Shown here piece after piece: positions 4,901 through 63,260 of a stretch of 64,000 nt of DNA. Each line of letters opens with the position of its first letter. Positions within the stretch are counted from its first letter, which is position 1. The position numbers and the translations under genes are program-made. Source of the DNA: Fimbriosthenelais zetlandica (taxonomy: Eukaryota); assembly GCA_977030845.1 (NCBI GenBank), contig OZ365110.1, forward strand, positions 44,268,001 through 44,332,000, given 5' to 3'. The notes beneath the pieces are model-generated. The model saw only the letters and a list, made by a program, of their open reading frames with translations, ran no database searches and had not been told where the DNA came from.

Positions 4901-7900
4901 GCTCCTCCTCTCCTTCCTCTTCTCCCATCCCCTGCCACCTTCTTCCTCCTACTGATGCCAGGAGGTGCAGCAGCATCCTTGGGAGGACACTTTTCAAACG
5001 GACAAGGAGGAGGTGGAGGGAGGGAGGGGGTGGCGGAGTTGGAAGTTGAAGGGGGAAAGCAAAAGAGGAAAAGCAAGCCATAGAGGCCAGAAAGAGCATA
5101 GGTCACATCCTCTTCAGTCATGTCTCTGTAGTATCATTATTCAATACCAAATAGATACAGAAACACTCCTTGCCAAGGCCTACAACACACCCACACACCT
5201 ATGTAAATGCCTGGGACTAATGCCAGTTCCACCTTCTCCTCCTCCACCTCAGCTCGTTCTGAGTAGCGTCCAGGGGGCTAGCACCTATCATTAGTCCATC
5301 CTCTCATTTCTCCGGGAGGTACGCACAAGAGTACTATTCAATACCAGCTCGAAGCTCTACTTCGGATAGCTTCATCCTCACCCGATAATTCCAAGAGGAT
5401 CTAATTCCCAGGACTCAGAGAATATCGACACAGTGCTTCGACTAAACTACTGGCCACCCACGATAGTGTTGCGTTCATTGTAGCAAGAGGAAAAACCGTA
5501 GGGGGGGAATCCTCACCTACTATATTGGATATTCTACAGGTTAAATCAAAAAGGTATGTATGGTCACCTCAATATCAACATCTACAATTCCCACCAGATC
5601 TCGTCCGGCACCAGCTGGATTCCAGTAGTCTTATCTTTAAAAAATATCTCACATTTAATTGTTGCATTTGGCCGTTTTACATTTAGTAGTTCTGCATGTA
5701 TGTTATATCTTTGAATGGAATGTTCAAGTCCTCTAACCCACCTATGTCAAGAAAACGAAAAAGAATAACGAACTATAAAAGATAAGCAAACTTTTATAAT
5801 TAATAGATCAGTCTCATAAATTACAATTCTGCACATCTCCATTTTAATCTGGGATCTCTAATTATATGCGAAATAGAAACTGGGGGCTGACTCAGGAGGC
5901 TCGCATATTGAAGTCTCCATCCCGAGATTGAAAGGACCTCAAAACTACATCTATCTCTCTGTATATCAGGTTTCAGAGAAGAAAAAGGCTCAAGCCGTGG
6001 TCCCTTAAGGGTCCTTTGTTATATTGTATATGATAGTGATGAAGGATGAAGTTTGTATCATATACATGCCCATGTAGATGATTTAAAAGATCAGTAGAAA
6101 GACATTTCCTTGCTAATTATATACTACACTTATGTGAATCTTGTTTGATTGAAATCAATTGAACGCAAGTTCCTGGTTGCTGCAGGCCCCAGGTTGTCGA
6201 AGTACCTATAATTAGTGTATCTACTAATTACCCGAGGAAACGCATTGGTATTTACCATTTATTGCTTGATCTTAATTGCTTGATAGTGCATATAGATAGC
6301 AGTCTCATCTTATTTATTGAGTTGAGAGATCCAGCATATGCCCATATGCCAACTCAGAGGACTTGCAGGACACATTAAGATGAGAATATATTTTATTGAG
6401 CGCTTATTTGTGTAATTGCATTCAGCAGATTCATTCTCAAGAAATAGCTAGAAAACAGCGAAAGGTATAGTCTGATAAATTCCTCTGTAAATGGGAAAAT
6501 GTAGTACCATGAAAAAGGCATTGTAATATATCAGGAAACTGCATTATCAATGAACTGTGTACATGGAATAAGGTCTATAGATATCAGTTATAGATATATC
6601 ACTAATCTCGTCATTCCATCCATGAATGATAACCACAATAGTTGTACAGATGTGATTTTAGATCAGAGATATTTACAATGCATGGGGCAAGAATAATTAG
6701 TATTAAAAATCAAAAGTCAGATCTAGAAATGACACAATGACCTCTCACCAAGAATGGGTTCAGTATTATTCTAATTAAAGATCGGTTGCCAATCTTTGCG
6801 ATGTCAGGTTTGCCATCAGGATTGCAATATCAGGGCTCGGGACGCTAAGCCTAATGCATGCCTTTCAATCAGGCTAGAAGGATTATCCTGAATTAGACTC
6901 AGCAAGAGCGTCTCATTACAGGCTAAGCGTTCTTGGCGCTATGACACTTCATTAGACTAAAGAGTCGTTGCAAATTCGATCCTAGAAAAATGATAATCCT
7001 ACCTATTCGAAATATTTTCTTTCGTGACAAAAAGGGAATATCTAATTATATCTGATTTGGGGACTTTACACTGTGCTTGTAGATGAGCCTACATTCACCA
7101 GTATTAAAATTCATTTATTATTCAACTAGATAGCTTTTGTGCATTTGGCGACATGGTGTTCTACAGCTGCATGGTCATTACATTAAAAGGTTCATTAAAG
7201 TAATTTATACATGCGGAAACTAGTGTACATCACTGAAAAACATTAGGAGGTGAAAGCTTCCTCTATTAATATGAGATGTGTATATATGAGGTATCTATCC
7301 CTGCATCCATTAAGTGTGACTGTGTAAGATAATTATGTCTCTATATTCATGCTGGGTAGTCTGCCACGATATTATTTGACAGAGGGGGGAGAGAACACAT
7401 GGCACACCTGCTTCTTTGGGTAAATCACGTTTATGGAGGCAGCAGAGCAGCAGACGTGCCATAGCAGCATCATTCCAGTCTCATTATCACTCAGGAAAGA
7501 AGAGCAACATGAAAGGTATTTTGTGAAGTTCACAACATTGACAATCGCTATGAGTGTGTCATCCTGTAAAGAGCAATGTTGTTACTTGACAAAGAAAAGG
7601 ATGTCATGACATGTTGTCATTGCAATTAGGGTATCATATGATTTTAAGTAGAAATAATTGGAGTTCGAGAATGAATTTCATTTCTTGGCTACTGAATAAA
7701 ATGGATTCCCTAAACAAAAAGGAAAAAAAGACTCACACAATTACCTACTTAGACGGAAAGAAGTCTGAAATTCCAGAATTTCCTACTTCCGCTTGTTCCC
7801 TTCATGAGCCCAGGGGAGGTATAAGGTGAAAGAAATAATTATCTCGGCTGGTCAGAGTGCAGTTCTATGTTAGTAAACGACTTTCCGTACAATCGAAAGA

Positions 7901-8130
7901 CAATTATGACCTTCAAAACCTTCAACAATATGCGCACTATTTCTAATGGACTTTCCATTTAATGTTGCATTTCTTTTCCTTTTTTAAAACAAAGCTCCCC
8001 TCTATCATGGGTGGTTGTATCGATAGCTGCCTGAGGTCAGAGCAAATCGGAGACGTACTAAGTAAGGCTTTGAAGTATATATACATGTACCTGCGTCAAT
8101 AATTTATTTTCGCTTCACCATATAACTTTC

Positions 8131-8160
8131 AACATGGCGCACAGAGCGGACGTGCATGCA
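8131..8160 (+). promoter_or_regulatory. Putative LINE 5' end / internal promoter with YY1-like AACATGGCG
   Basis: aacatggcgcacagagcggacgtg...gcgctcc lies about 190 bp upstream of the ORF1 ATG and resembles the ATGGCG..GGACGTG..GCTCC pattern I recall from L1-type 5' ends. Confidence 0.4.
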
Positions 8161-8321
8161 TAGCGCTCCGGGAATTCTACTGGATAATGTACCCTGTTAA
8201 CTGACATATGGCTCTAAAAGTGGATTTAATGATATAACATTTAGTGCACTCCCCCCTGGTATCCCTGGATCTGGTAAATTATCATTTGAACAGCCGTTTT
8301 TTCTTGATTTTCTTGGGAATC

Positions 8322-9566
8322 ATGGCTGACGCCCGACAAACACGCAGTACTTCTAAAGCCAATCTACTAACACAAAGGACTTTACCAAGGGATACAACCC
8401 CCAATGAACCCATAACTTTTCAACCCTCTCCTCAGCGCCACACAGGAAACCCTGATATCACTTCTACAACACAATTCAGAGGGAATAGTGAGGACAGAAC
8501 GAAGGAGACACAGGGGAAAAGTAATAAGGGTTTAGACAAGGAATTAAGCAATGAAGCTCAAAATGTTGACAGAGAAGAAATTTCTGAAGGGGGGCACAAC
8601 CAAGGGGGTGAGTTGTCACTAAAGGATATAATGAGCAAATTGGAAAACATTGAAAATAACACGTTAAAATCACTGGAGAACAAATTCACTACAAATATAG
8701 ATGAACTAAAAGCGATCATCCAAGATAAAAATGATGAAATTGAAAATCTATGTCATCATGTGGACGAAATCACCCATGAAAACGCCTATCTACAAACCAG
8801 GGTAAACTCACTGGAAAAAAGAGTAGAGTCTCTAGAGTTAGAGAGAAAAAGAAATAACATAATCCTGGATGGTTTATTCGAGACAGAGAATGAGAACCTG
8901 AGAGAAAAAGCATGTAATTTATTTACTGCACTGGAAAGTAACCTCCAAGACAGCGATATTTCTGCAGTCTACCGCATAGGGAAAGGAACAGGTAGAAAGC
9001 CCCGACCAATCTTACTGCGGCTCAAACACTCTTCACACAAAGAAGAGCTTTTCAAAGGTGTGAAAAACCTCAAAAACAATGAAGCGTGGAAGGGTGTATA
9101 CCTAAATCAAGACTTATCCCACCAACAACTAGCTGAAAGACAAGATCTACGGTGCATTCACAAATATGCGAGAAACAAAGGGATTAATTGCAAGCTAGCT
9201 GGTCGGGTCTTAATTATTGATGGTAAGCGCTACCTCCACCAAGACATAAAAAACTTGCCGCATGACTTGACCTTGGAAAAAGCCAAATGGGTAGAAGTGG
9301 ACGAGGGATTAGCCTTCCAATCTCATCATGTATTTCTTTCTAACATGTTTCCATGTGAGATCCGCATAGAGAATAGGACATTCAACAGCGCAGAACAACT
9401 ATACCAGTACAAGTGCGCTCAGCTGTGTGGACGGCCTGAGAAAGCAGCTGCTATTCTCCAATCAACAAATGCATATGAAGCAAAGAAAATTGCCAAGGAG
9501 ATAAAAAAAAACAGAAGAATGGGAAACCAGCCACGACATATGGCTAGACATCAAGGGTTTTTTTAA
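8322..9566 (+). mobile_element. LINE ORF1p (coiled coil + RRM + CTD, Transposase_22/L1TD1-like) fused to a C-terminally truncated NADAR/YbiA-like domain; no ORF2 follows
   Basis: Intronless ORF, likely start MADARQ at 8322. Heptad coiled coil (LENIENN...VNSLEKRVESLELE), RRM motifs KRNNIILDGL / AVYRIGK..RKPRPILLRL / GVYLNQDLS, CTD ..LIIDGKRY. From about 9300, AFQSHHVFLSNMFPCEIRIENRTFNSAEQLYQYKCA...EAKKIAKEI matches YbiA FSNF..WPI.VDGKTWPTSEHYFQAQK. An A9 run at 9503-9511 shifts the frame away from the homologous KTEEWE. Confidence 0.85.
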
Positions 9567-10141
9567 AGATACATTACATAAAAGCACTTATATTTGAGAG
9601 TGTCACATCAGAAATGTCAGAATATGTTTTTAGAATATAGACATGTGGGTACATGTATTTGCATTAGTTTCCCATCACCGTTGTGGCCCTTTTCTACTCT
9701 AAGGTTACACCCAGTAATGAAAGTCACCTCTGGGGGACACAGTCCCCATACCTAAAGTGTAAATAATCTATATTCTCCCACTGGCTCTGGGATACTGCAG
9801 GAATGCCTGGGCATTGAATGTACCTAACCGAGTTATAACATCTCACGTCCGCATCATCAGCTGGAATAACATCTTAACCACACTATAATCACATCTCAAC
9901 ACTTTCACCTTTGGCATTAATTCATGCTGCTACTCCTTGCCTGCCTTTTCGAGCATTTGCTTTGAGCAATTCATTGAAATCCTTGCGGGAAAAGAAAATT
10001 TAGGGGAAAAAAAGAATAACCAGGGACAGAATGCATGGTCATTGTGTGGTGTTTTCAATAGCTAGGTAGTCAATCTTGATAATGCAGACTGCAGGCTGTT
10101 AATTCTCGTGATGTTTATTTGTTGTTTTTGATAGGTGTTCA

Positions 10142-10464
10142 ATGGACGGGGAAAGCGGAGGCGGGCCGGATCTTGAGCCAAGCCTAATGGCTGAAACCAA
10201 CACCAAGCACATGTCCACCATGGGAGGCTGTGTAAGCTATCTGCTCCTGTTCCTTGGCTGGCTATTGTTAAACGTGGCCACCTTCGCCATCGTCACTATT
10301 CCCTCCTCAGCTCAATTCCTTGACGTTGAGCCTCACTTGCCCGAGGAAGAGAAATATGTTGTCTTCGGCCTCTGGGTGCTGATTGAGATTGCTCTCTTCT
10401 TCGTCCTTCTCGTAGGAGCTACTGTTATAATGTGTACATGCAAAAGTGTTCCTCCTGGAGCAGG
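10142..10464 (+). CDS. TMEM236-like coding exon 1
   Basis: ATG at 10142, two TM helices, donor gg|GTAAGT (phase 2). Confidence 0.8.
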
Positions 10465-13400
10465 GTAAGTATTTCCTCAAAATATTAAAAATTCTCATTG
10501 ACTAAACTTGCAGCTTTTCAACTATAAGAATGGCTTTCCTAACAGCAAGATCATTTAGTTTGAGGATAGTTGATCAGACAAAGACAGGTTACCTACATTT
10601 ATGGGGGACCCTTGATGGATGCACGACTATAGATACAATACTTATAACCTGAGTCATCTATGGATTCGTCTATTAATAGTTGCTCCAGCACCTATATCAG
10701 TGCCCAGGGTATGTATATATCCAGACACATATCTAACAAAGCAAATGTCAGACATGACATTTGTAGAGCTCTCTGCTTCAGTCAACCACTTCAAAGGCAG
10801 AGCATGAGATCTGAGCTGTAAGCCAGAGCCCACGGCCAGGATTCCATCCATATCCATATCTACTTTTGGCAAGGTAAAACAAAGGGGCTAACCACTATGA
10901 TCATATACACAGGAAAACATTTTAAGGCAACGTATAACTCCATGGTATATTTTGTGGCAATTTGAATGCAGTGCAATCTGAAGATTTCCTTTGCTGAAAG
11001 CTGAAGCTGAAATTCTATGCCATATGTATATACATGTACAAATTTTAATATGCCAGGATTATAGTTTTAGGTAGCATTAGATTGGCATGGATAACAGCTC
11101 GGTTGCATGTTGTTCCTTTCCCATGATATTCATCAAGAGGTACCAAACATAGTTGTCGACAGGCTGCTGTATAGAGGAAATCTATATAGGTAAAGCAGGC
11201 CAAGATTATTGTCCATGCTGTCAATGCAACGCCAAAATATCAGACCAATTTCCCTGATTCCATGATACACAAATGTAGATAGAGAGGCAAGAACACCCAT
11301 CTTCATCTCCCCCGATCCTCTTTCTGCAATATGTCATTTCCCCTGATCCTCTTTTCCAATATGTCATTTTCCTTCAGCCAATCTTTTTCAGGAGAGAATC
11401 CCTGGGAAGCTCGTAATGGCTTCACGCTTTCAGCAATCACATGGTTGCATGAACTTGACGGACATTTTAATGGGATTCCGTGACTATCCAATTAAAGTTC
11501 ATCTTACGTCTTCGTAGTGTTCAATGTGATGTTTCTTTGAAGAATATAAGGCTGGCTGAAGAATAGGACGAAGGGAAGGGAACGAAGAAGAGCATAACCC
11601 GGGGCTAGCCTAATGTTGTTAAAGCAAAATCTCTAAATAATTCCTGAACGCTTTACATATAGGAAAGAAAGAGGCATGCTTGTTTCGCCATTTCTTTCCT
11701 CTGTAGCATACAATGCCTATAGATAAAATATCCATCCATGTGTTCAGCCCGGAGTAAGGAGCCGATCATATTGTCTAACAATGCCTTGCTCTTCCCTGAA
11801 GGGTTCATGAATTTTCATAAACGAAATACACCTAAACAGGAAAAGGAGAAGAACCGATTGAAAAAGAATCTTTTACTGAACCCTTCAGACATAAATCTCT
11901 TACCACAGGAGCAGCTCAGTATAGACACCTTGATTATCAGGAAGGATGTTAAGGTGCTCAACTGAGATTCAATCGCTTTCAGCTTTTAATTCCCTCTGTG
12001 GTTGCAAGCAGCCACGAAGGGCATACAACCTCGCTATAGATTCCCAGCCTCAGGTGTTGATTTACTTAAGCCCCAAGGCTGCAGAACACCATATATATAG
12101 CGGACCCCAAAGCAGGTATATATTTATTAATGCTTGCCCGTGCCTCGGCACCGCTTTGTATTCCCATTACTTAAGCATGAGTCTCACGGGGATAAAGGCC
12201 CTGGGAGGTGTTATTCAACACGGAGAAAGCGTCAGCAAGATTTATAATAATGGGCATGGAGTTATAGGCCTACGCTGAAGAGATTATGATCAAAGGAAGA
12301 AAAGTTTAGGACATGTAAGATGCATTCCCACTAATAAAATATAACCAATGATAATATATCTTGGCCAATCCTATCAGGAATGATAGAATCCTTTTTCATT
12401 TCCACTGATGGCCCAGAGCCAGTCCACTGAAGATACGAAAGATGAGTAGGCCTATATTTTAAACATTAAGTAATGTATTGAGGCCCTCTTTCGAAAGCAA
12501 AGTACTCAAATCTGTGGGAATAGACTGTGACCTTGGGCCAGAGTCGGACCAACCAATCTGACCTTGTTTAATTGAATCATGTTTGTGCCGGAAATTACAC
12601 GATCAAACATGGCCTCTGCCTTGTGCTCTGACATAAATGAAACAGCCCGAAGGCCATAGATGCCAAGTCCCCATAATAAAGAAAGAGTAATATTACCATG
12701 AAATACACATTAGCCGATTGAAAGGGGGAAGCTCTAAAGCCAGTCACTTGTTGTCGAGGACTGCCATTTACGTGCCCCTTACTTCAAGTCAACGCTAACA
12801 AGTCTATATTCTATACCGGCCTGCACAATTCTACCCATGCCTGCTTAAAGTAATGCAATTTGACGCTTTAAGTTCTTCTACATGATTCAGCATTCCAGAC
12901 CCCGGTTTGACTCATTGGTTTGTCCAATTCCTGAGAGGTGCCAGCATGTCTGTTTAGGCAGTCATTCTCGACGTTATCGAAGGCTCTCGAGTTGTTCAGT
13001 AACCCTGCCTGCCCTCTTAATCCGAGGACCTCCATCATAGAATGTACCTCATAGGCCCACTTTACAAGAGGAACATAATCCCCTGACATTCCCACTTCCG
13101 GGCCAGGGGTCCACTTGGTCATGTTCCTTAAAGGCCTGCAGTGTGGAGTCGGATTGGGCTGAGAGAAATGCTTGATTCTCCTGAATCAGCTCCTGATAAC
13201 GCCCAGTTCACCGGGATTGCGTGTCTCCACGAGTTGGCCTCCAGGAAGTACATTGATTTTAGCTAATACAAAAATAGGAGGTCGGTGATCAGACACCCAA
13301 TAACCAGATTAGTCCCATGCAAGAATCTATGCAATACTTTGATGCAATAATAAAAACAAGCTGTATTTCATAAGCGTAATTACACGTATGAAATGCAGGT

Positions 13401-56500: not shown

Positions 56501-59500
56501 AAGTCCATTGAGCGATGTTTCTTACCTGGAGCAAAATCGGTCTCTCCACTGAAGCGTATGACACCTCGCCTTTGTCCAGCCACCAGCACTCTCTCCCCTT
56601 CCTCCAGTACTTCCTCTACACTAGGCTGGCTCCCTCCAGTACGTGATGAACGTGGCCGGTTCAAACCTACAGAAAGAAAGAGCAGATCTAGTCAGTTATA
56701 TTTATTTATTAGATAGGATTTATAGTATAACAATAAGGCCCCACCATGATTCCTTAAGAGCACGGGCAATTTCCCAAAGATAAATGATTAATTTCTTATA
56801 GAATGTCCGCCATCTTTCAGGACAATATAAGACAATTAGGGATCATTATATTTTCATATTATTTCTATATTCATACCAAAGTAAATTTTTTTCAAATTAA
56901 AGTTCCTTGACATATTTTACGACTTTGTTTTACAGGCCCATAACTATGATCGTATATCGATGGAGAATATCGAGTAAACTTGCATTCAGGGTTGCATGCA
57001 AGGATGTCTTTTATGTTTTACACATAACGGCATCAAAAACTATTTGTTAATCTGCTGCAAAGAGTAGTGGATGGTAAATTCAGTAAACACACAAGGTATA
57101 GGGTTGTCTTGGAAGATTTAAAACATTTGTGGTACCTTTTGTACCATCACAGTGGTACCTTTCATATGATAGGAATGAACTCGTGTTCTGAGCATCTAGT
57201 ACCATTCAGGTAATGCCCGTGGTACATTTCATTTAATAGCATTTTGCTGAAATCGTTTATAGTAATCAGTTGTATAATTTATAGTAGGCTACACTTGGGA
57301 CGGCAAGGGCAAAAGGTAATGAACAGAGGTATGAGAAATATGATGCAACAGTCATGCATGGTGTCACACACTTCAAACTGGCATCCATTCCTATACACCT
57401 TCTGCCTTATCAATTGTCTCTTTTTCCTCTTTCTGCTCCTCCTTTCCCTTCTCCTCTTTTTCCTTTTCCTCATTTTCCACCTTTCCCTTCTCCTCATTTT
57501 CCTTCTCTTTTTCCTTCTCCTCATTTTCCACTATAATTCAAGATTGGTCATTCAATATGTATTCATATCTTATAAATGGCGAAAAAGAATATTGTAACAG
57601 TTTGGCAACATCGAAAGATCCACATGAACTTTGTGAAAACTGAAAAAAAAATCAATACTGAAATGATTATTTGAAGTCTGGTGACATGTTCTTAAGTTTT
57701 ATTTTTCATTCTTAAATTAAATAAGTTAAAGAATAGTTTCGCATACCTGTATCCACTTTAGCTTTCACATTGGATGTGTCCACATGGGCATAATTGACTG
57801 CTTTTCGGAAATTTGGAGTCCGGTTTACTAAGATTCCTGGCTTAGATATCTTGGTGACTGGAGCAAAGATACCTGAGCAAAAAAAAGTTTATGATGTTTG
57901 GTGATCTATTGGGAACTGTTTTTTAAATCATTGGATAAATTCTAATATTATGTACATTATAAGGATAACAATACATTCTGGAAAACAAGTCCTACCGTGT
58001 TTGGGAGAGCATTTGAAGTAGGATACACCTCCGACCCCGCCATCGTTTTTGCCAGCTGGTTCATCTAACTCGATGCCAGCCCAGATGCCTGAGGCGAACT
58101 CAGTCGGACCACAAAACCTCAACACTCCAGTCTGTAAAAATTAAAAATCGTTAACACTTTCAATGGAAATGCACCCAGGACCAACTGGGTCAAAAGAAAG
58201 CATTCTTTCCACAACCTGATAAATTAACTATAGAACCCGTACTCCTTCGATTTAATTTTCTACCAGTTGTGTGGAGAACTTAGGTTTCAGAACACTTTTA
58301 TTTAACCAATACCACATATAAAGTGTCTTTTGAGGCTTTATTATATGACTTCCCCAAAAGAGGTTGGACAACAAGTGAGGCGCAAATAATATTTGAGTCT
58401 AAAAACAAGTATCTTTTTAAACATACCTTGACACCTCCGACCACTACTTTGTCACCGATCTTGAGACCGTATGCCTGTAGTGTGACCTTGGCCTGAGCCC
58501 CCTCTATGTCAGGGGAGTCGGGACGGTGCGCCTGCTCGGCCTCCTTCATGATCTTGCTCATTTTGATAGCAGACTCCCGCAGGCTGCCCTCCAGGCCTTC
58601 CATCTCTGGCACACATTCTGTAAAGATTAGAGAATTTAACATCAGGATTGTAATCTTCATTTAAAAGTTACAATTGGATGTCGGAGGACAGGAGTGGTAG
58701 GGAACCTATTGAGTAATCAATGGGAAGAACTGATTTAATAGGTCGCTCCTTGATTATTTCTAGATTAGTGTCGGATTACAGACATAGAGATAGAATGGTG
58801 GGTAGACTAGAAGATGGAAGCAGAGAAGGGAAATAGAGAAAAAGCTGTGGACAGGGAAGAAGACATAACAAAAAGAACAGCGGGAAGGATGGAGGAGGAT
58901 AGAAGTGTACATGGGTTAACAAGAAGAAAGAGGAAGGAAAAAATACGAATTTAATGCCATGTCAGAAAATTAGACTGAAGAAAGAAGTAAAGAATTAAAG
59001 AAGGAAGGAGGGAAGGAATATGGAGCAGAGTGTCTGCAAATTTCCTCCAGACTTATTTACTTATTTACATTAATAAATTGTTAGCTTTGACGCTTATAAC
59101 GTATACACCAGTTTGAGATAATAAAACATGTATATGATCTAGGACAAGGATGACTCACGTTGGGATCATTATTGTATAGACAATGTGTAACTCACACCTG
59201 ACGCTATATCTTCATAGGGGCGCGTTGTATTTATTTGTCTAGTCTACAGCTGGTCAATTATTTATCTGTGCAACCACAAAAGTTATTTATTCCATACAGA
59301 GAATTGCTATTCTGCATGGAGTATTTGATAATGTACTGGCAAAGACAAAACTGAAAAAGTTTGAATTAGAAATCTACATGTAGACTCTACATCTAGGGGT
59401 TATTTCATTATCCCCAGCTAACATGATACAGGGGAATCCAAGGCATTTCAATTTATAAGTAATGAAAAAATATATAAAAAGAAAAGAAAAACATCGAACA

Positions 59501-62500
59501 AGGTACCTCCTGAAAATCTCTTTGTTGCAATCCAACTGGTCCTAACATTGCTGAATTCAAATCTAACTTTTGTGTTGCTTTGCATCTTCTTAGTCCGGCT
59601 GCCTTTTGGGCGGGGTGTGGCAGACATGCCCTTCAACTGTTTCTTCCCTCCAGTCTGACCAGCGGTTCCATTCCCATTCCCACTGTCAGACTCACTCTCA
59701 CCATCAGCTTCAAATACATCATCCTCATCATCATCATCAGACAACATGATGCCTCGCTCATCCTGTCTCATTTCTAAACTAGACGCAGATCGGTCTACGT
59801 ATTTTCCAGCGTTCCACTCCTCTTGGTCGTCACTGTGGATTATACCCAGATCATCACTCATGTCCAGGAGGCCTTCTGCACACTGAGAGGAAACCACAGT
59901 CTCGGGGGCATAATCATCAAGCTGGCTTATCCTCCTTGACGCTGTTGACGAGCTGTCAGAATCAGTGGATGCAATGCTGGCTCCTCGGGACAAGTCGACC
60001 GCCTCAGTGATGTCTTCACTCTCGCTGTCAGCCAGACGACTCTCAGAGTCCACACTGACATCACGCTGTATGCTGCTGGTGTCAGTACTAGCAACACTTT
60101 CCCTTTCCTCTCTCTCCTCTTTATTCTTAACTCCATCTGCTTCCAAAGATAGATCTCCATTCTCAGTGTGCTCTTCTGACTGTGAATTTAGAATGGAAAT
60201 AGTGTCAATCCTGTTCTCATTTGTGTTGCTGATGGATCCATTCACATTATCAACTGATGAATTTGGAATTAAAGCATTCACTGGCTTATCCTCCACTTGC
60301 TGTCTCTCTTCTGATTCAATGACAGATGAATGGATATCTTCAGGGATATCATCCAATTTGTCATCTGTTGGTTCCTCTGTTGGTTCATTGTCCTTTTCTA
60401 TCTCTATCTCCAATGAAACAGCAGGAGTTGAACCTAAGTCTTCATCTTTATCAGGACTGATGTTTTCTGAAAGGCTAACATCCTCAGAGCCAATGTCATC
60501 ACATGATAAGAGATCGATTTTGGATGGGGAACGTTCAGGTGTGGGTCTTCCATCTGCACCTAGAATAAAAGGTGGAGGTGAACTGTCTTTTACAACATAT
60601 TCCTCTGTATGTTCAACCGAGACATAGTTGGCATGGCATTGACTTAGTCTTCCCCTCTTGTTGTCCTCTACCTTCAAATATGCTGAAGCCCTTTGCTCAA
60701 CATTTCCGTTCTCTCTTGGAGAAACCGGTTCCATTTCACCAAGAGTTCCTTGTTCAGGCATCTTTCTGGCATCTTTCTGATGACCGTTTTCCTGGAGTTG
60801 ATCCTCAAGGCTTAATTTTGAGAGCTCTTCTAACTCCTGACCTTCTTGGGTCACTTTCCCATTATAAACCATGTCATTCAACTCGTTTAATTTTTCCTTT
60901 TGACCCAGAATCACATCAGCATCATTTGGTTTCCTTTCAGGATCTGAAACCATGGAATCGTCGCTGTGGTATTCATTTGGATCTAACCCAGAGTTGTATT
61001 CATTTTTCTGATCTTTAACACAAATACCAGCATCTGCATCAGTTATCAACTCCCCTCCCACAATAACAGCATCTTTCTCATTGCTACCATCATGATTGGA
61101 GTTTAATTCTAAAGAGTCCACGCTTGTGTGATCATCTATTTCTACCACATTTTCCTCCAGACTATCTAGCTCCTCTGATCTTGATTGTTCAGCCTTCTCT
61201 TCTTCTTCCCCTGTTCTGAAAGGGCCTCCTCCTTTTATCAGCATCACTTCACCCACTGGTTTATTATTACCCTCTTCTTCCTCTTCTTCTTCTTCACTTC
61301 CAGGATGTTGCTCAGCAACAACTTCTTTTTCAATGATGGCATCATTATGCACATCCAGAGATATTTCACTACTGGACATTTCATCTACCACATTCCGGCT
61401 GTCCTGATTCCTTTGAATGTTGTCATGTCCCTTTTGATTGACGCCAAGAAATTCTGCGTTCTCCATATTTGTGTCAGCCAATCCTTCCAGAATACATTCC
61501 CCATTTTCTATATTCTTCTCAACCACCTCTTCCACCATATTATTCTGCTCACTCGTTGTTGACTTAAGGTCAGTGCTTTCAGAAGTTTCCTTTTCCGGGA
61601 TCAACTGACTTTTATCATCCATGAGGGAAGCATCCAGTCCTGATTCTATAGCAGTTTCAGCGACTTCACGTTTGGTTTGTTCCTTATACACAAAGCCTTC
61701 TCCGTTAGATCGCTCCTCAATGCATGTCACCACTTCGTCACTGACTGGAAATGAAAGGCTTTCACTAGAATTTTCTTGCTGCCTCAGCAACCCACTGTGC
61801 ACCATCATACCACCCAGTGTCCTGAACGCTCGCTCTTCACTCCCAAGCTCATCTTCATTGGGAAAGAGTCCAATCTGGGGGTAGTCTCCCCTTTCTGTGG
61901 ACTGCAATTTCTTGTCTCCATTTATGCCTGCTTCAATCCCATCGGCTTTAGGTCCTCCATTCTCAGAATCAGAACTGTCCTCAGCTTTGCCATTGGCAGC
62001 ATCCTCTCCAAGTTTATGGACTATCCCCTTCCTCTTTTTCCCAATTTTGAACATTGAAAGGAATTCCTTGAAATGGCTGATCATAATAGGTTCTTTTTCA
62101 CCCACTTTCTGACCATTCCCATCGATCACTGAACCTTCAGTTTCGACTTCTTTTAAGGGAGCCGCAGGTGTGTTGCATTCAGCAGATAGATTCACCTCCT
62201 CGAAGTGAGTTGTATTAGGTTCTTCCCCTTCATTAACTTTCCCAGAATAGTTTTCTTCTTTATCACTCTGCGTTTCCTCCATATCACTATCCCTTCTCCC
62301 CTCGGACACTCCTGAATGTTTCACATCTTCAATGATACCTATTTCCTCATCAAGTCCTGATTTGACTTGATCTCCTGCCGAAATTCCTCCTGAATAAACT
62401 TCGGGCAGATTATCTTTGTCCATTCCATCAGGTTTGCTCTCAATGTCATTTCTATCCTGATAAGGAACTGCACCATAGGATTCCGGATTGGATTCATCCT

Positions 62501-63260
62501 CGGTTTTATTACCTGGACTTGGCTTCTCAGGATGCATACAAGAAACCTCAGATATTAACTGCTCTTCGTCATTTATAGCTGGTGCAGGATTTATAGTTCC
62601 ATGGTGAGTTCCACCTCCATCATGATTTCCTTCATCAAATCCCTCATCAAGAGATTTCTCTGAACTCAAGTCCTTATCTTCGCGATGTTCCCTCTTCATT
62701 GGGCCCTGAATAAGGTTATTTGAAAGGCCAGTGGTTTCCATGTGATTCCCGTTCCCAAACATCTCCTCCGCATTGTCCAGTTTGTCAATAGAACAATCCT
62801 CAGGTCTGAAGTTTTCTTTGTGTCTATTTTCACTGGGCAACATGATGTGGACATTTTCCCCTTGACTGAATCCAGTCTGGGCACTACCCTGTATTTCTAA
62901 TCCATTTTTGTTAACAGGTAAAAGAATTTGCTCCTCTTCTCCTCTAATAACTTCCCCGTAGGTTTTCTCTCTTTCCATTTGTTCCTCCTCGGGTCCACTA
63001 TCAACATTCCATACTGATTTAAGTCCCTCATCCACGGGTTGGACGTCATCTCTGATGTTAAGTTTCAGATCATGCTGATCAAGTCCCTTTTGTGTTCGTG
63101 GCTGCGGCTGTTGGTCATCTGTTAAACGAATGACTGAACTGACCGCTTCATTGACCACTTCAGGTGTTGGTCTCTCCAGAGTGTCCTCATCTGCTCCCCC
63201 TCCTCCTCCCTCTCCCCCTACTCCTCCTGCTGGAGCTTCCTTTGAGCTTGATTTTCCCAT
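53317..63260 (-). CDS. CLIP4: CLIP3/CLIP4-like protein with three CAP-Gly domains, about 1674 aa; exons 63260-59507, 58617-58427, 58131-57996, 57872-57747, 56666-56526, 56320-56197, 55615-55472, 54780-54727, 53992-53880, 53558-53317
   Basis: Three GKNDG CAP-Gly motifs. [28 protein letters not shown] and the terminal [28 protein letters not shown] closely match CLIP4. All junctions are GT-AG and phase-consistent; 5025 nt including the stop. Confidence 0.9.
53880..53992 (-). CDS. CLIP4: CLIP4-like exon 9
   Basis: ...[16 protein letters not shown]; donor GTAAGG. Confidence 0.85.
54727..54780 (-). CDS. CLIP4: CLIP4-like exon 8
   Basis: 54 nt, [18 protein letters not shown]; phase 2-2; donor GTAAGT. 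Confidence 0.75.
55472..55615 (-). CDS. CLIP4: CLIP4-like exon 7
   Basis: 144 nt, [24 protein letters not shown]...; phase 2-2. Confidence 0.75.
56197..56320 (-). CDS. CLIP4: CLIP4-like exon 6 (CAP-Gly 2)
   Basis: [40 protein letters not shown]. Confidence 0.95.
56526..56666 (-). CDS. CLIP4: CLIP4-like exon 5
   Basis: [28 protein letters not shown]. Confidence 0.9.
57400..57530. repeat. Polypyrimidine (TTCC/TTTC-type) low-complexity tract
   Basis: Almost purely C/T run in CLIP4-like intron 4. Confidence 0.8.
57747..57872 (-). CDS. CLIP4: CLIP4-like exon 4
   Basis: [10 protein letters not shown]...[14 protein letters not shown]. Confidence 0.9.
57996..58131 (-). CDS. CLIP4: CLIP4-like exon 3 (CAP-Gly 1)
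   Basis: [46 protein letters not shown]. Confidence 0.95.
58427..58617 (-). CDS. CLIP4: CLIP4-like exon 2
   Basis: ECVPEM...[22 protein letters not shown]. Confidence 0.9.
59507..63260 (-). CDS. CLIP4: Giant (3754-nt coding) acidic low-complexity first coding exon of the CLIP4-like gene
   Basis: About 1250 open codons. Acceptor ttttacAG at 63300-63301, in-frame TGA at 63273-63275 before aaaaATGG. Phase-1 donor gag|GTACCT at 59506 matches exon 2. Confidence 0.85.

Follow-up and report, generated by a model that had tools for sequence, protein, structure and literature searches.

LINE ORF1 proteins that carry a YbiA-type NADAR domain in the genome of Fimbriosthenelais zetlandica

We looked at a stretch of 64,000 nucleotides of the Fimbriosthenelais zetlandica genome (contig OZ365110.1, positions 44,268,001 to 44,332,000 of the forward strand; hereafter the window), in which a piece of a long interspersed nuclear element (LINE) carries an open reading frame (ORF) of the ORF1 kind. 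On the + strand, this ORF runs without introns from its first ATG at 8322 to a TAA stop (9564-9566) and counts 414 codons. A preliminary description had read it as a LINE ORF1 protein (ORF1p), made of a coiled coil and an RNA recognition motif (RRM) together with a C-terminal domain (CTD), that continues in frame into a NADAR domain. The features of the locus are given below; the protein domains were placed with an AlphaFold2 (AF2) model of an intact sister protein, and pLDDT is the predicted local distance difference test score of that model.

8130..8321, + strand: 5' untranslated region (UTR) of the LINE copy, with the 5' terminus at 8130 and a single-copy upstream flank
8322..9566, + strand: the ORF as found, a truncated and frameshifted ORF1 of 414 codons plus TAA
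8322..8618, + strand: N-terminal low-confidence or disordered region, residues 1-99, with a short predicted helix at 63-87 (AF2 of the sister)
8619..8849, + strand: predicted long helix or coiled coil, residues 100-176 (AF2 pLDDT above 94; its C-terminal part aligns to the 2YKP/2YKO coiled coil)
8850..9113, + strand: predicted RRM, residues 177-264 (match to 2W7A)
9114..9272, + strand: predicted L1-type ORF1p CTD, residues 265-317 (matches to 2YKP_A and 2LDY up to residues 315-316)
9273..9502, + strand: N-terminal half of the NADAR domain, residues 318-394, with the LSN motif (Pfam NADAR and sister model)
9393-9395, + strand: codon of the putative catalytic Glu358
9411-9416, + strand: codons of Lys364-Cys365
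9503..9511, + strand: homopolymer of nine A (A9), a +1 frameshift relative to the intact copies (copy alignment)
9512..9529, + strand: final 18 LINE-derived bases, out of frame (blastn and alignment)
9530..9566, + strand: unique non-LINE flank, supplying the last 12 codons and the stop (only a self-match for window 9530-10130 in the 447-Mb genome)

The LINE origin of this ORF was seen from its copies. Window positions 8116/8130-9529 were found by blastn to be 98-99% identical to copies on five other contigs, and the family as a whole comprises about seven loci on six contigs at 95-100% identity. One of them, locus L031 on contig C22, holds an intact ORF1 (1140-2570, 477 amino acids); the window copy is 99.2% identical to L031 over 1,414 bp, and the window ORF shares 98.7% amino-acid identity with the intact sister protein over residues 1-385. 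In four copies the homology starts at the same base (window 8130, CAACATGGCGCAC...) and the DNA upstream is unrelated, which indicates that 8130 is the 5' terminus of the element. At the other end, every blastn alignment with L031, L032 and L034 stops at window 9529, and both flanks (7500-8115 and 9530-10130) are single-copy in the 447-Mb genome. The nine A at 9503-9511 are eight A in the C22 copy and a T followed by seven A in the C19 copy, and the A9 (+1) state, absent from these two, is common to the window copy and to the C11 copy (L034:2313-2322). Since A9 shifts the frame and homology ends at 9529, the tail of the window ORF after ...KEIKK is made of out-of-frame LINE bases (9512-9529) and then of unique flank. 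The presence of A9 in two copies could come from a shared defective source, from recurrent slippage or from an error of homopolymer assembly. The window copy thus keeps an intact 5' end, has lost everything 3' of the middle of the NADAR domain and has no ORF2. LINE copies are usually truncated at the 5' end; the loss seen here is the opposite, and it therefore probably came about by a deletion or rearrangement after insertion, or reflects a problem of the assembly. The window copy is a dead, frameshifted, 3'-truncated 5' fragment (8130-9529) of a young, low-copy LINE family.

The C-terminus of the window ORF matched the Pfam NADAR family with an E-value of 3.3e-6, residues 335-396 covering positions 9-79 of the 163 in the profile, and TIGR02464, a riboflavin-intermediate N-glycosidase domain, with an E-value of 5.6e-7. 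Only the N-terminal half of the domain is present, and its score of 27.9 bits lies under the Pfam cut-off of 35.1 because this copy is frameshifted and truncated. The intact L031 ORF1 matched Pfam NADAR (PF08719) with an E-value of 1.6e-27 and 97.2 bits over profile positions 9-162, and it matched the P. nicotianae NADAR structure 8BAU by sequence at 5.5e-13. Contrarily, Pfam Transposase_22 (PF02994), the other family that the preliminary description had named, gave no match with the window ORF at E-values up to 1 or with the intact sister ORF1 up to 0.01, and the atlas feature matches of ORF1 to Transposase_22 clusters reached only 0.78-0.80. The kinship of this ORF1p to that of L1 rests for this reason on predicted structure.

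The AF2 model was made of the intact L031 ORF1p (477 residues, 98-sequence alignment) and not of the window copy. Its pLDDT was 86.5 overall and above 94 from residue 100, with values below 50 at residues 1-61 and 89-97, and its predicted template modelling score (pTM) was 0.73. When the PDB was searched with this model by Foldseek, the best matches were 8BAU, the complex of P. nicotianae NADAR with ADP-ribose (2.1e-9), E. coli YbiA 2B3W (2.7e-6) and the trimer of human L1 ORF1p (2YKP/2YKO/2YKQ, from 3e-8 upwards). VIA-align superposed 8BAU on residues 318-477 of the model (Z 21.3, root-mean-square deviation (rmsd) 1.9, 159 residues; 2B3W, Z 15.8), 2YKP_A on residues 132-316 (Z 10.7, 179 residues) and 2W7A, the central domain of human L1 ORF1p, on residues 175-264 (Z 11.2, rmsd 2.5, 88 residues). 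The RRM-CTD structure 2LDY aligned with Z 9.8, and many generic RRMs with Z of about 7. From AF2 and VIA-align together, the map of L031 ORF1p reads as disordered (1-99), coiled coil (100-176), RRM (177-264), CTD (265-317) and NADAR (318-477), and the predicted structure follows the order of a type II ORF1p, with a coiled coil, a single RRM and a CTD. Altogether, the model indicates that the LINE ORF1p encoded by intact copies is L1-like in its architecture and runs in frame into a complete NADAR domain of the YbiA type. The fusion proposed in the preliminary description is hence borne out by an intronless ORF, by Pfam and by a predicted structure that includes both an L1 ORF1p-like part and a NADAR fold of the YbiA type.

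We looked at what follows ORF1 in the sister copies. In L031, ORF1 ends with a TGA that is followed, after 12 nt, by a same-frame ORF of about 215 amino acids and then by ORF2. The ORF2s of L031 and L035 contain Exo_endo_phos_2 and RVT_1 domains (Pfam), that is, an endonuclease and a reverse transcriptase (EN-RT). Full-length ORF2s of 959-978 amino acids were found in L035, L037 and L038, and the elements L035 and L038 end in AATAAA and poly(A). A defined 5' end, a 3' tail and an interspersed multi-copy distribution were all seen among these elements, as in APE-type LINEs. The four copies of the window family that were read past ORF1 are damaged in different ways: in L031, the end of the middle ORF is broken and ORF2 is truncated; L034 has a frameshift, a deletion in the middle ORF and a split ORF2; L032 loses homology just past ORF1; and L033, the C1 copy, carries a 7.3-kb insertion (L033:1809-9144) exactly between ORF1 and the middle ORF. 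In the 3' UTR of two elements, just past the ORF2 stop, the motif TTGTCGAACGAT[AG]A was noticed twice in L034 (5840-5975) and once in L035 (5130-5160, - strand); the ORF2s of these motif-bearing families are about 49% identical, and the motif may be a recognition element of the reverse transcriptase. A deletion derivative was also noticed at three loci or more (L016, L017, L018 and L040; C39:4.61 Mb, C38:0.05 Mb, C40:0.23 Mb), in which ORF1 stops in the middle of NADAR and ORF2, beginning at about its residue 212, follows with hardly any gap; the C-terminal half of NADAR and the N-terminal part of the endonuclease are thus lost. It is either an amplified defective element or a set of segmental duplicates.

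The middle ORF was identified as a separate SGNH/GDSL esterase of about 215 amino acids (L031:2586-3161, +; L033:1143-1787, -; also L013, L019, L021 and L025), which sits between ORF1-NADAR and ORF2 in several families. By sequence, it matched GDSL lipase profiles weakly (6e-5), and a homologue search returned a single distant match. The SGNH blocks DSRGR, GG[VI]N[DG]L and DGLHP are kept in five families that are 30-48% identical. Its AF2 model, made from a 6-sequence alignment, had a pLDDT of 89.1, and in a PDB search the top matches were all GDSL/SGNH hydrolases (3P94 at 1.2e-6; 111 hits at E<=1e-3). The predicted fold of the middle ORF is thereby confirmed as that of an SGNH/GDSL hydrolase. 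Other families of the genome have no recognisable esterase ORF and show a non-coding spacer of 0.65-1.2 kb between ORF1 and ORF2.

For linkage, 46 loci from the genome that contains the window (L001-L040 and L044-L046) were counted, together with six contigs of other samples. With the window ORF as query, tblastn gave 101 scored matches out of 476 candidates, most of them spanning residues of about 100-400, which hold the coiled coil, RRM and CTD together with NADAR. The NADAR profile gave at least 151 matches above the cut-off among 483 candidates; among the 150 of them listed, 138 were free of stops and about four in five lay in open frames of 300-860 amino acids. These 101 and 151 matches exclude a chance fusion, and, with more than 100 independent loci, it is very unlikely that ORF1 and NADAR were joined by misassembly. 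At no fewer than 22 of the 30 best loci, an esterase ORF, an EN-RT ORF or both lie downstream on the same strand. Sister copies with ORF1-NADAR followed by an EN-RT ORF2, as the preliminary description had expected, therefore exist. The NADAR domains that were sampled in this genome are overwhelmingly parts of LINE ORF1s. A stand-alone NADAR of 175 amino acids was also noticed at L046 (C10:16163162-16166599; ORF 1486-2013, -), with a Pfam E-value of 8.7e-35, the canonical Lys and Trp, and neither RRM nor CTD in its frame; it might represent an exon of a host NADAR or a LINE copy truncated at its 5' end.

The window copy taken by itself, in unique DNA and without ORF2, might suggest a host gene, a domesticated ORF1-NADAR, a chance fusion or an assembly artefact at this locus, and one stand-alone NADAR ORF exists, at L046. 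Against this, its 98-100% identical copies on five other contigs are followed by ORFs for an esterase and an EN-RT, frameshift and truncation mark the window copy itself, and hundreds of paralogous fusions are found here and in other samples, which makes such an origin extremely improbable. A host gene or a chance ORF was rejected on the multi-contig copies linked to esterase and EN-RT ORFs.

The fusion was also found outside this genome. A HMMER search of 1.84 billion cluster representatives (50% identity) returned 8,897 proteins at E<=1e-3, of which 237 at E<=1e-30, and in most of the top 150 matches one unbroken alignment reached from the RRM region through to where NADAR ends. In four contigs of other samples (L041, L042, L047 and L048), ORF1-NADAR is followed by an EN-RT ORF2. 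In the atlas, ORF1 fell into clusters of Eukaryota/Annelida only and ORF2 into echinoderm and cnidarian clusters. Two public predictions, P0032 (4,240 amino acids) and P0127 (1,075 amino acids), contain 7 and 5 separate ORF1-NADAR-like stretches, respectively; several LINE copies have probably been merged into one gene model in each of them.

The ORF2s that accompany ORF1-NADAR are of different types. That of the window family (L031) matched human L1 ORF2p over residues 464-717 only, which is the reverse transcriptase core (E 1.4e-21), and that of L035 matched it at 1e-8, on par with R2; a C-terminal Cys/His motif was not seen in the ORF2s of the families of this genome. Contrarily, in L042 (ena:ERZ22147071 ctg31494l; ORF1-NADAR 6001-7347, ORF2 8989-12153), ORF2 matched human L1 ORF2p over residues 5-902 at 1.9e-90, and this nearly full-length match indicates that L042 is a true L1-group element; its ORF1-NADAR is 26% identical to that of the window family. 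The ORF2s of this genome group with L041 and L048 at 31-44% identity and share only about 65-84 bits, as do L041 and L048, with the ORF2 of L042, while that of L047 is a third, distant type. From these comparisons, the ORF2 of the window lineage is not L1-type, and the LINE backbones that bear the ORF1-NADAR module are of at least two deeply different kinds. A C-terminal ...FK..K..L tail and a LxYG..VW-type motif in the ORF2s of this genome may be CR1/L2/Jockey-like. Our impression, from these motifs, from the lack of global likeness to L1 and from the esterase ORF, is that they may belong to the CR1/L2/Jockey supergroup; poly(A) tails, however, are atypical of CR1/L2. Type II ORF1p is known in the L1, CR1, L2 and R1 clades, where ORF1 evolution has been described as reticulate and modular (PMC4120745), and the presence of ORF1-NADAR on both L1-type and non-L1 ORF2s fits this description.

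The catalytic residues of the NADAR domain were then compared. Active-site residues known from the P. nicotianae structure and from mutagenesis of the E. coli C7 enzyme (PMC11543638) were mapped by phmmer alignment to 8BAU, with the following correspondence between P. nicotianae NADAR and L031 ORF1p.

E43 corresponds to E358
K75 corresponds to K388
R79 corresponds to K392
W89 corresponds to W400
R93 corresponds to K404
E125 corresponds to E435
D130 corresponds to D439
W133 corresponds to Y442

E43 is the glutamate of the SxE motif. The KF motif is also kept in the L031 NADAR, and the loop that holds Y84/D86 in P. nicotianae is two residues shorter. In a set of 98 representatives of the ORF1-NADAR family, the putative catalytic residues E358 and E435 were each present in 97, S340 and K415 in all 98, and W400 in 91. 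Position 439 was occupied by D in 58 representatives and by N in 22, and position 442 by W (70), F (18) or Y (10); position 365, the column of P. nicotianae K50, was K in 42 and R in 33 (75 of the 98 together). The C-terminal NADAR motifs looked for on the strength of the preliminary description are therefore complete in the sisters, with the catalytic residues conserved, and are missing from the window copy, which lacks the catalytic C-terminal half and keeps only E358 of the two glutamates. Hence the family has a NADAR profile match, copies linked to reverse transcriptase ORFs and catalytic residues in place, and none of the three findings that would have spoken against the preliminary description (no profile match, host genes never linked to a reverse transcriptase, catalytic residues absent) was made.

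The residue in the last strand distinguishes NADAR subfamilies, Glu being the YbiA type, Asp the BC4488 type associated with DarT, and His the phage type (PMC11125620). With Glu435, the LINE domain is YbiA-type, whereas the antitoxins of DarT-NADAR systems, which the preliminary description had cited, belong to the BC4488 (Asp) subfamily. A DarTG-type toxin-antitoxin module at this locus was rejected, on Glu435 and on the esterase and EN-RT neighbours.

Selection was estimated on the NADAR part. Between two copies of the subfamily, the ratio of nonsynonymous to synonymous divergence (dN/dS) was 0.14 (dS 0.10); compared with a family that is 64% identical, the proportions of nonsynonymous (pN) and synonymous (pS) differences were 0.17 and 0.81, the latter being saturated. 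Purifying selection and residue conservation together indicate that NADAR has been kept as an apparently catalytic unit. The NADAR fusion is old, widespread and under purifying selection, and we are close to certain of the anatomy of ORF1-NADAR and of the selection acting on it. That the LINE NADAR is an active hydrolase is probable.

What such an enzyme would do on a LINE can be proposed by analogy. ORF1p would coat, in cis, the RNA of its LINE, and would probably do so as a trimer held by the coiled coil, like that of L1; a trimeric ORF1p would put several NADAR active sites on the ribonucleoprotein (RNP). Acting as an N-glycosidase, NADAR may take ADP-ribose (ADPr) off guanine or cytosine of LINE RNA, of nascent cDNA or of single-stranded target DNA, either on the bound RNA or on cDNA and target strands during target-primed reverse transcription. 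The removal of bulky base adducts would keep the template readable by the reverse transcriptase, or unmarked, and the base ADP-ribosylation countered in this way might come from host or microbial ADP-ribosyltransferases or from damage. All NADAR types tested, which include E. coli and myxobacterial YbiA and oomycete and sponge enzymes, hydrolyse ADP-ribose from guanine N2 in single-stranded DNA and guanosine-ADP-ribose in RNA, and cytidine-ADP-ribose is also cleaved by YbiA-type enzymes and by a sponge NADAR (PMC11543638, PMC11125620, PMC11833690, PMC12945103). As to the source of adducts, actinomycete toxins have been proposed for animal NADARs (PMC12945103), and guanine-specific DNA ADP-ribosyltransferases, e.g., CARP-1, reportedly occur in shellfish. 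The NADARs tested so far act on ADPr linked to the bases G and C in DNA and RNA and are inactive on thymidine-ADPr and on phosphate-end ADPr (PMC11833690, PMC12945103), and the countering of PARP put forward in the preliminary description is thus unlikely as stated. Our reading that the LINE NADAR is a nucleic-acid base ADP-ribose eraser serving retrotransposition is tentative, at or a shade under what we give to the whole statement, fusion anatomy plus eraser mechanism, for which we would put the chances slightly below even. A wider proposal, in which LINE NADARs are a counter-defence against ADP-ribosylation on LINE RNA and cDNA, many 'animal NADAR homologues' are retrotransposon ORF1s and the module has moved between LINE groups, seems rather unlikely.

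Several points weigh against an eraser of base ADP-ribose. The window copy is non-functional and is only a pointer to its family. The K50 column holds Cys365 in the window family and the relatives nearest to it, where a Lys or Arg stands one residue earlier, and the W133 equivalent is Tyr442 in the window family. The established role of E. coli YbiA is that of a small-molecule N-glycosidase in riboflavin metabolism (PMC11543638), so the substrate could be other than a nucleic acid. Moreover, profiles of DarT (PF14487) and ADPrib_exo_Tox (PF03496) had no match in the genome, in an exon-by-exon search in which the control genomes were silent too and which therefore says little.

The substitutions raise the idea that catalysis has been lost, at least in the window family, and that NADAR is a binding or structural module, e.g., a reader of ADP-ribose or NAD. 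K50 of P. nicotianae corresponds to K95 of E. coli C7, an essential, phosphate-binding residue of which the K95A mutation impaired the enzyme and K95R was tolerated (PMC11543638); the column holds Cys365 here, Trp133 is replaced by Tyr and the Y84/D86 loop is shortened. On the other side, both catalytic glutamates, D439, W400, K388 and K404 are retained, every related family seen, down to those that are 38-66% identical, has a Lys or Arg directly beside Cys365, and the predicted fold superposes on 8BAU at the low rmsd given above with a dN/dS well below 1. The [KR]-C variant leaves a question mark over the activity of the NADAR of the window lineage, and we hold a loss of catalysis to be quite unlikely, the least likely of the explanations that take the domain as a LINE module.

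A small molecule as substrate, such as free ADP-ribose, NAD-derived metabolites or reactive ribosylated intermediates, is unlikely too, though it is the strongest of the rivals to base ADP-ribose erasure. The benefit to the element would then be indirect, e.g., the clearing of an inhibitory or signalling nucleotide near the RNP. The domain belongs to the YbiA subfamily, with Glu in the last strand, and YbiA cleaves riboflavin-pathway intermediates (PMC11543638); E. coli YbiA is among the weaker enzymes on RNA with guanine-linked ADPr (PMC11833690), and an NCBIfam search gave a weak match to a NADAR anti-phage protein. However, the tether to an RNA-binding chaperone, kept in hundreds of families, suggests action on the RNP, base-linked ADP-ribose on DNA and RNA is cleaved by every enzyme of the YbiA type tested, and there is no evident reason for a LINE to bear a riboflavin damage-control enzyme. 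Alternatively, NADAR might process the RNA of the element itself, the general role proposed for RNA-virus NADARs, with no counter-defence. This has been suggested for the NADARs of Ectocarpus Gypsy elements and oyster LINEs with reference to the original NADAR bioinformatic study (PMC12477816), and the fusion partner binds RNA. Yet no NADAR is known to work on RNA ends, the E. coli C7 NADAR is inactive on RNA and DNA ADP-ribosylated at the 5'- or 3'-phosphate (PMC11833690), and most LINEs manage without a NADAR, so that we find this processing role a little less likely than a small-molecule substrate. The removal of base ADP-ribose is the reading that we retain.

To our knowledge, ORF1 proteins are the least understood part of LINEs, with accessory modules (esterase, PHD, zinc knuckles) for which no role is established. 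An apparently catalytic ADP-ribosyl-base hydrolase on an RNA-coating protein would link retrotransposition to nucleic-acid ADP-ribosylation, a field seen up to now in terms of conflicts that involve bacterial toxin-antitoxin systems and phages. NADAR biochemists themselves have asked what role the domain plays in animals (PMC11125620, PMC12945103). If the counter-defence proposal is true, it would point to an as yet unknown ADP-ribosylation-based restriction of retrotransposons, or to heavy exposure to microbial toxins that ADP-ribosylate G or C, in marine invertebrates. As at least 151 NADARs are found in this genome and those sampled are mostly LINE-borne, host-defence readings of animal NADARs should first exclude a transposon origin. 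That ORF1-NADAR goes with an ORF2 of the L1 type in one organism and with a non-L1 one in this genome makes a clear case of reticulate, modular ORF1 evolution (PMC4120745). New here are the predicted CC-RRM-CTD-NADAR architecture (CC, coiled coil), the residue conservation with the K-to-C shift, the three-ORF layout with an SGNH esterase, the size of the family in this genome as in public data, the finding that it accompanies ORF2s of the L1 type as well as non-L1 ones, and a warning that 'animal NADARs' may for the most part be genes of transposons.

Elsewhere in the window, at 59448-63260 on the - strand, an intronless ORF of 1,270 codons was noticed, which encodes a very acidic, low-complexity protein with a MGKSSSK start and a hydrophobic tail and which matches no Pfam family.

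Finally, we compared ORF1-NADAR with known systems. As in human and mouse LINE-1, the ORF1p has the predicted order of coiled coil, RRM and CTD and lies upstream of an EN-RT ORF2; unlike these, it has no Transposase_22 sequence match and bears an extra C-terminal enzyme domain of 160 residues. The NADAR part has the same predicted fold, a helical core between two small sheets, as E. coli YbiA (2B3W) and P. nicotianae NADAR (8BAU), with the catalytic glutamates, D130, W89, K75 and the KF motif. While those enzymes are free-standing, the domain studied here is fused to the RNA-binding protein of a mobile element, and the window family differs from P. nicotianae NADAR by Cys in the K50 column with the Lys shifted by one, Tyr for W133 and a shorter Y84/D86 loop. 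DarT1-NADAR (DarTG1) and the orphan counter-defence NADARs of phages likewise offer a NADAR of a selfish or mobile genome as a possible eraser of base-linked ADPr (PMC11543638; PMC11825919), and the counter-defence proposal leans on this analogy of function; those are of the BC4488 (Asp) type paired with DarT or of the phage (His) type, whereas the one found here is YbiA-type with Glu.

The nearest system is in Crassostrea gigas. In the literature searched, only one paper links NADAR to ORF1: it states in one sentence that the ORF1 proteins of several Repbase Tx1 families of this oyster appear to hold a YbiA-family NADAR, and it reports that, in a single Gypsy lineage of Ectocarpus, Pol begins with a NADAR at its N-terminus (PMC12477816, Genome Biol 2025). 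The preliminary description, which knew of no NADAR as an ORF1p accessory, had thus been preceded. Both systems resemble ours, the oyster one by a YbiA-type NADAR on a LINE ORF1p and the Ectocarpus one by a NADAR on a retrotransposon Pol; for the oyster, the paper stops at that sentence and a figure of the alignment, and takes up neither a census nor a structure nor the individual residues. Unlike what the L1/Tx1 label implies, the ORF2 of the window family is not globally L1-like, and several families add a separate ORF for a predicted SGNH esterase. Esterase-bearing ORF1ps of CR1/L2 LINEs were reportedly described by Kapitonov and Jurka in 2003. Like these type IV ORF1ps, the elements studied here have an SGNH/GDSL esterase 5' of ORF2 in a non-L1 LINE (PMC3905857; PMC4120745), and 3P94, our top Foldseek match, is the template reported for the L2 esterase ORF1 (PMC4120745). 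In that study, esterase ORF1s were found only in vertebrate CR1/L2 subgroups (PMC4120745); here, by contrast, the predicted esterase is a separate ORF that follows a type II ORF1-NADAR in an invertebrate-like genome.

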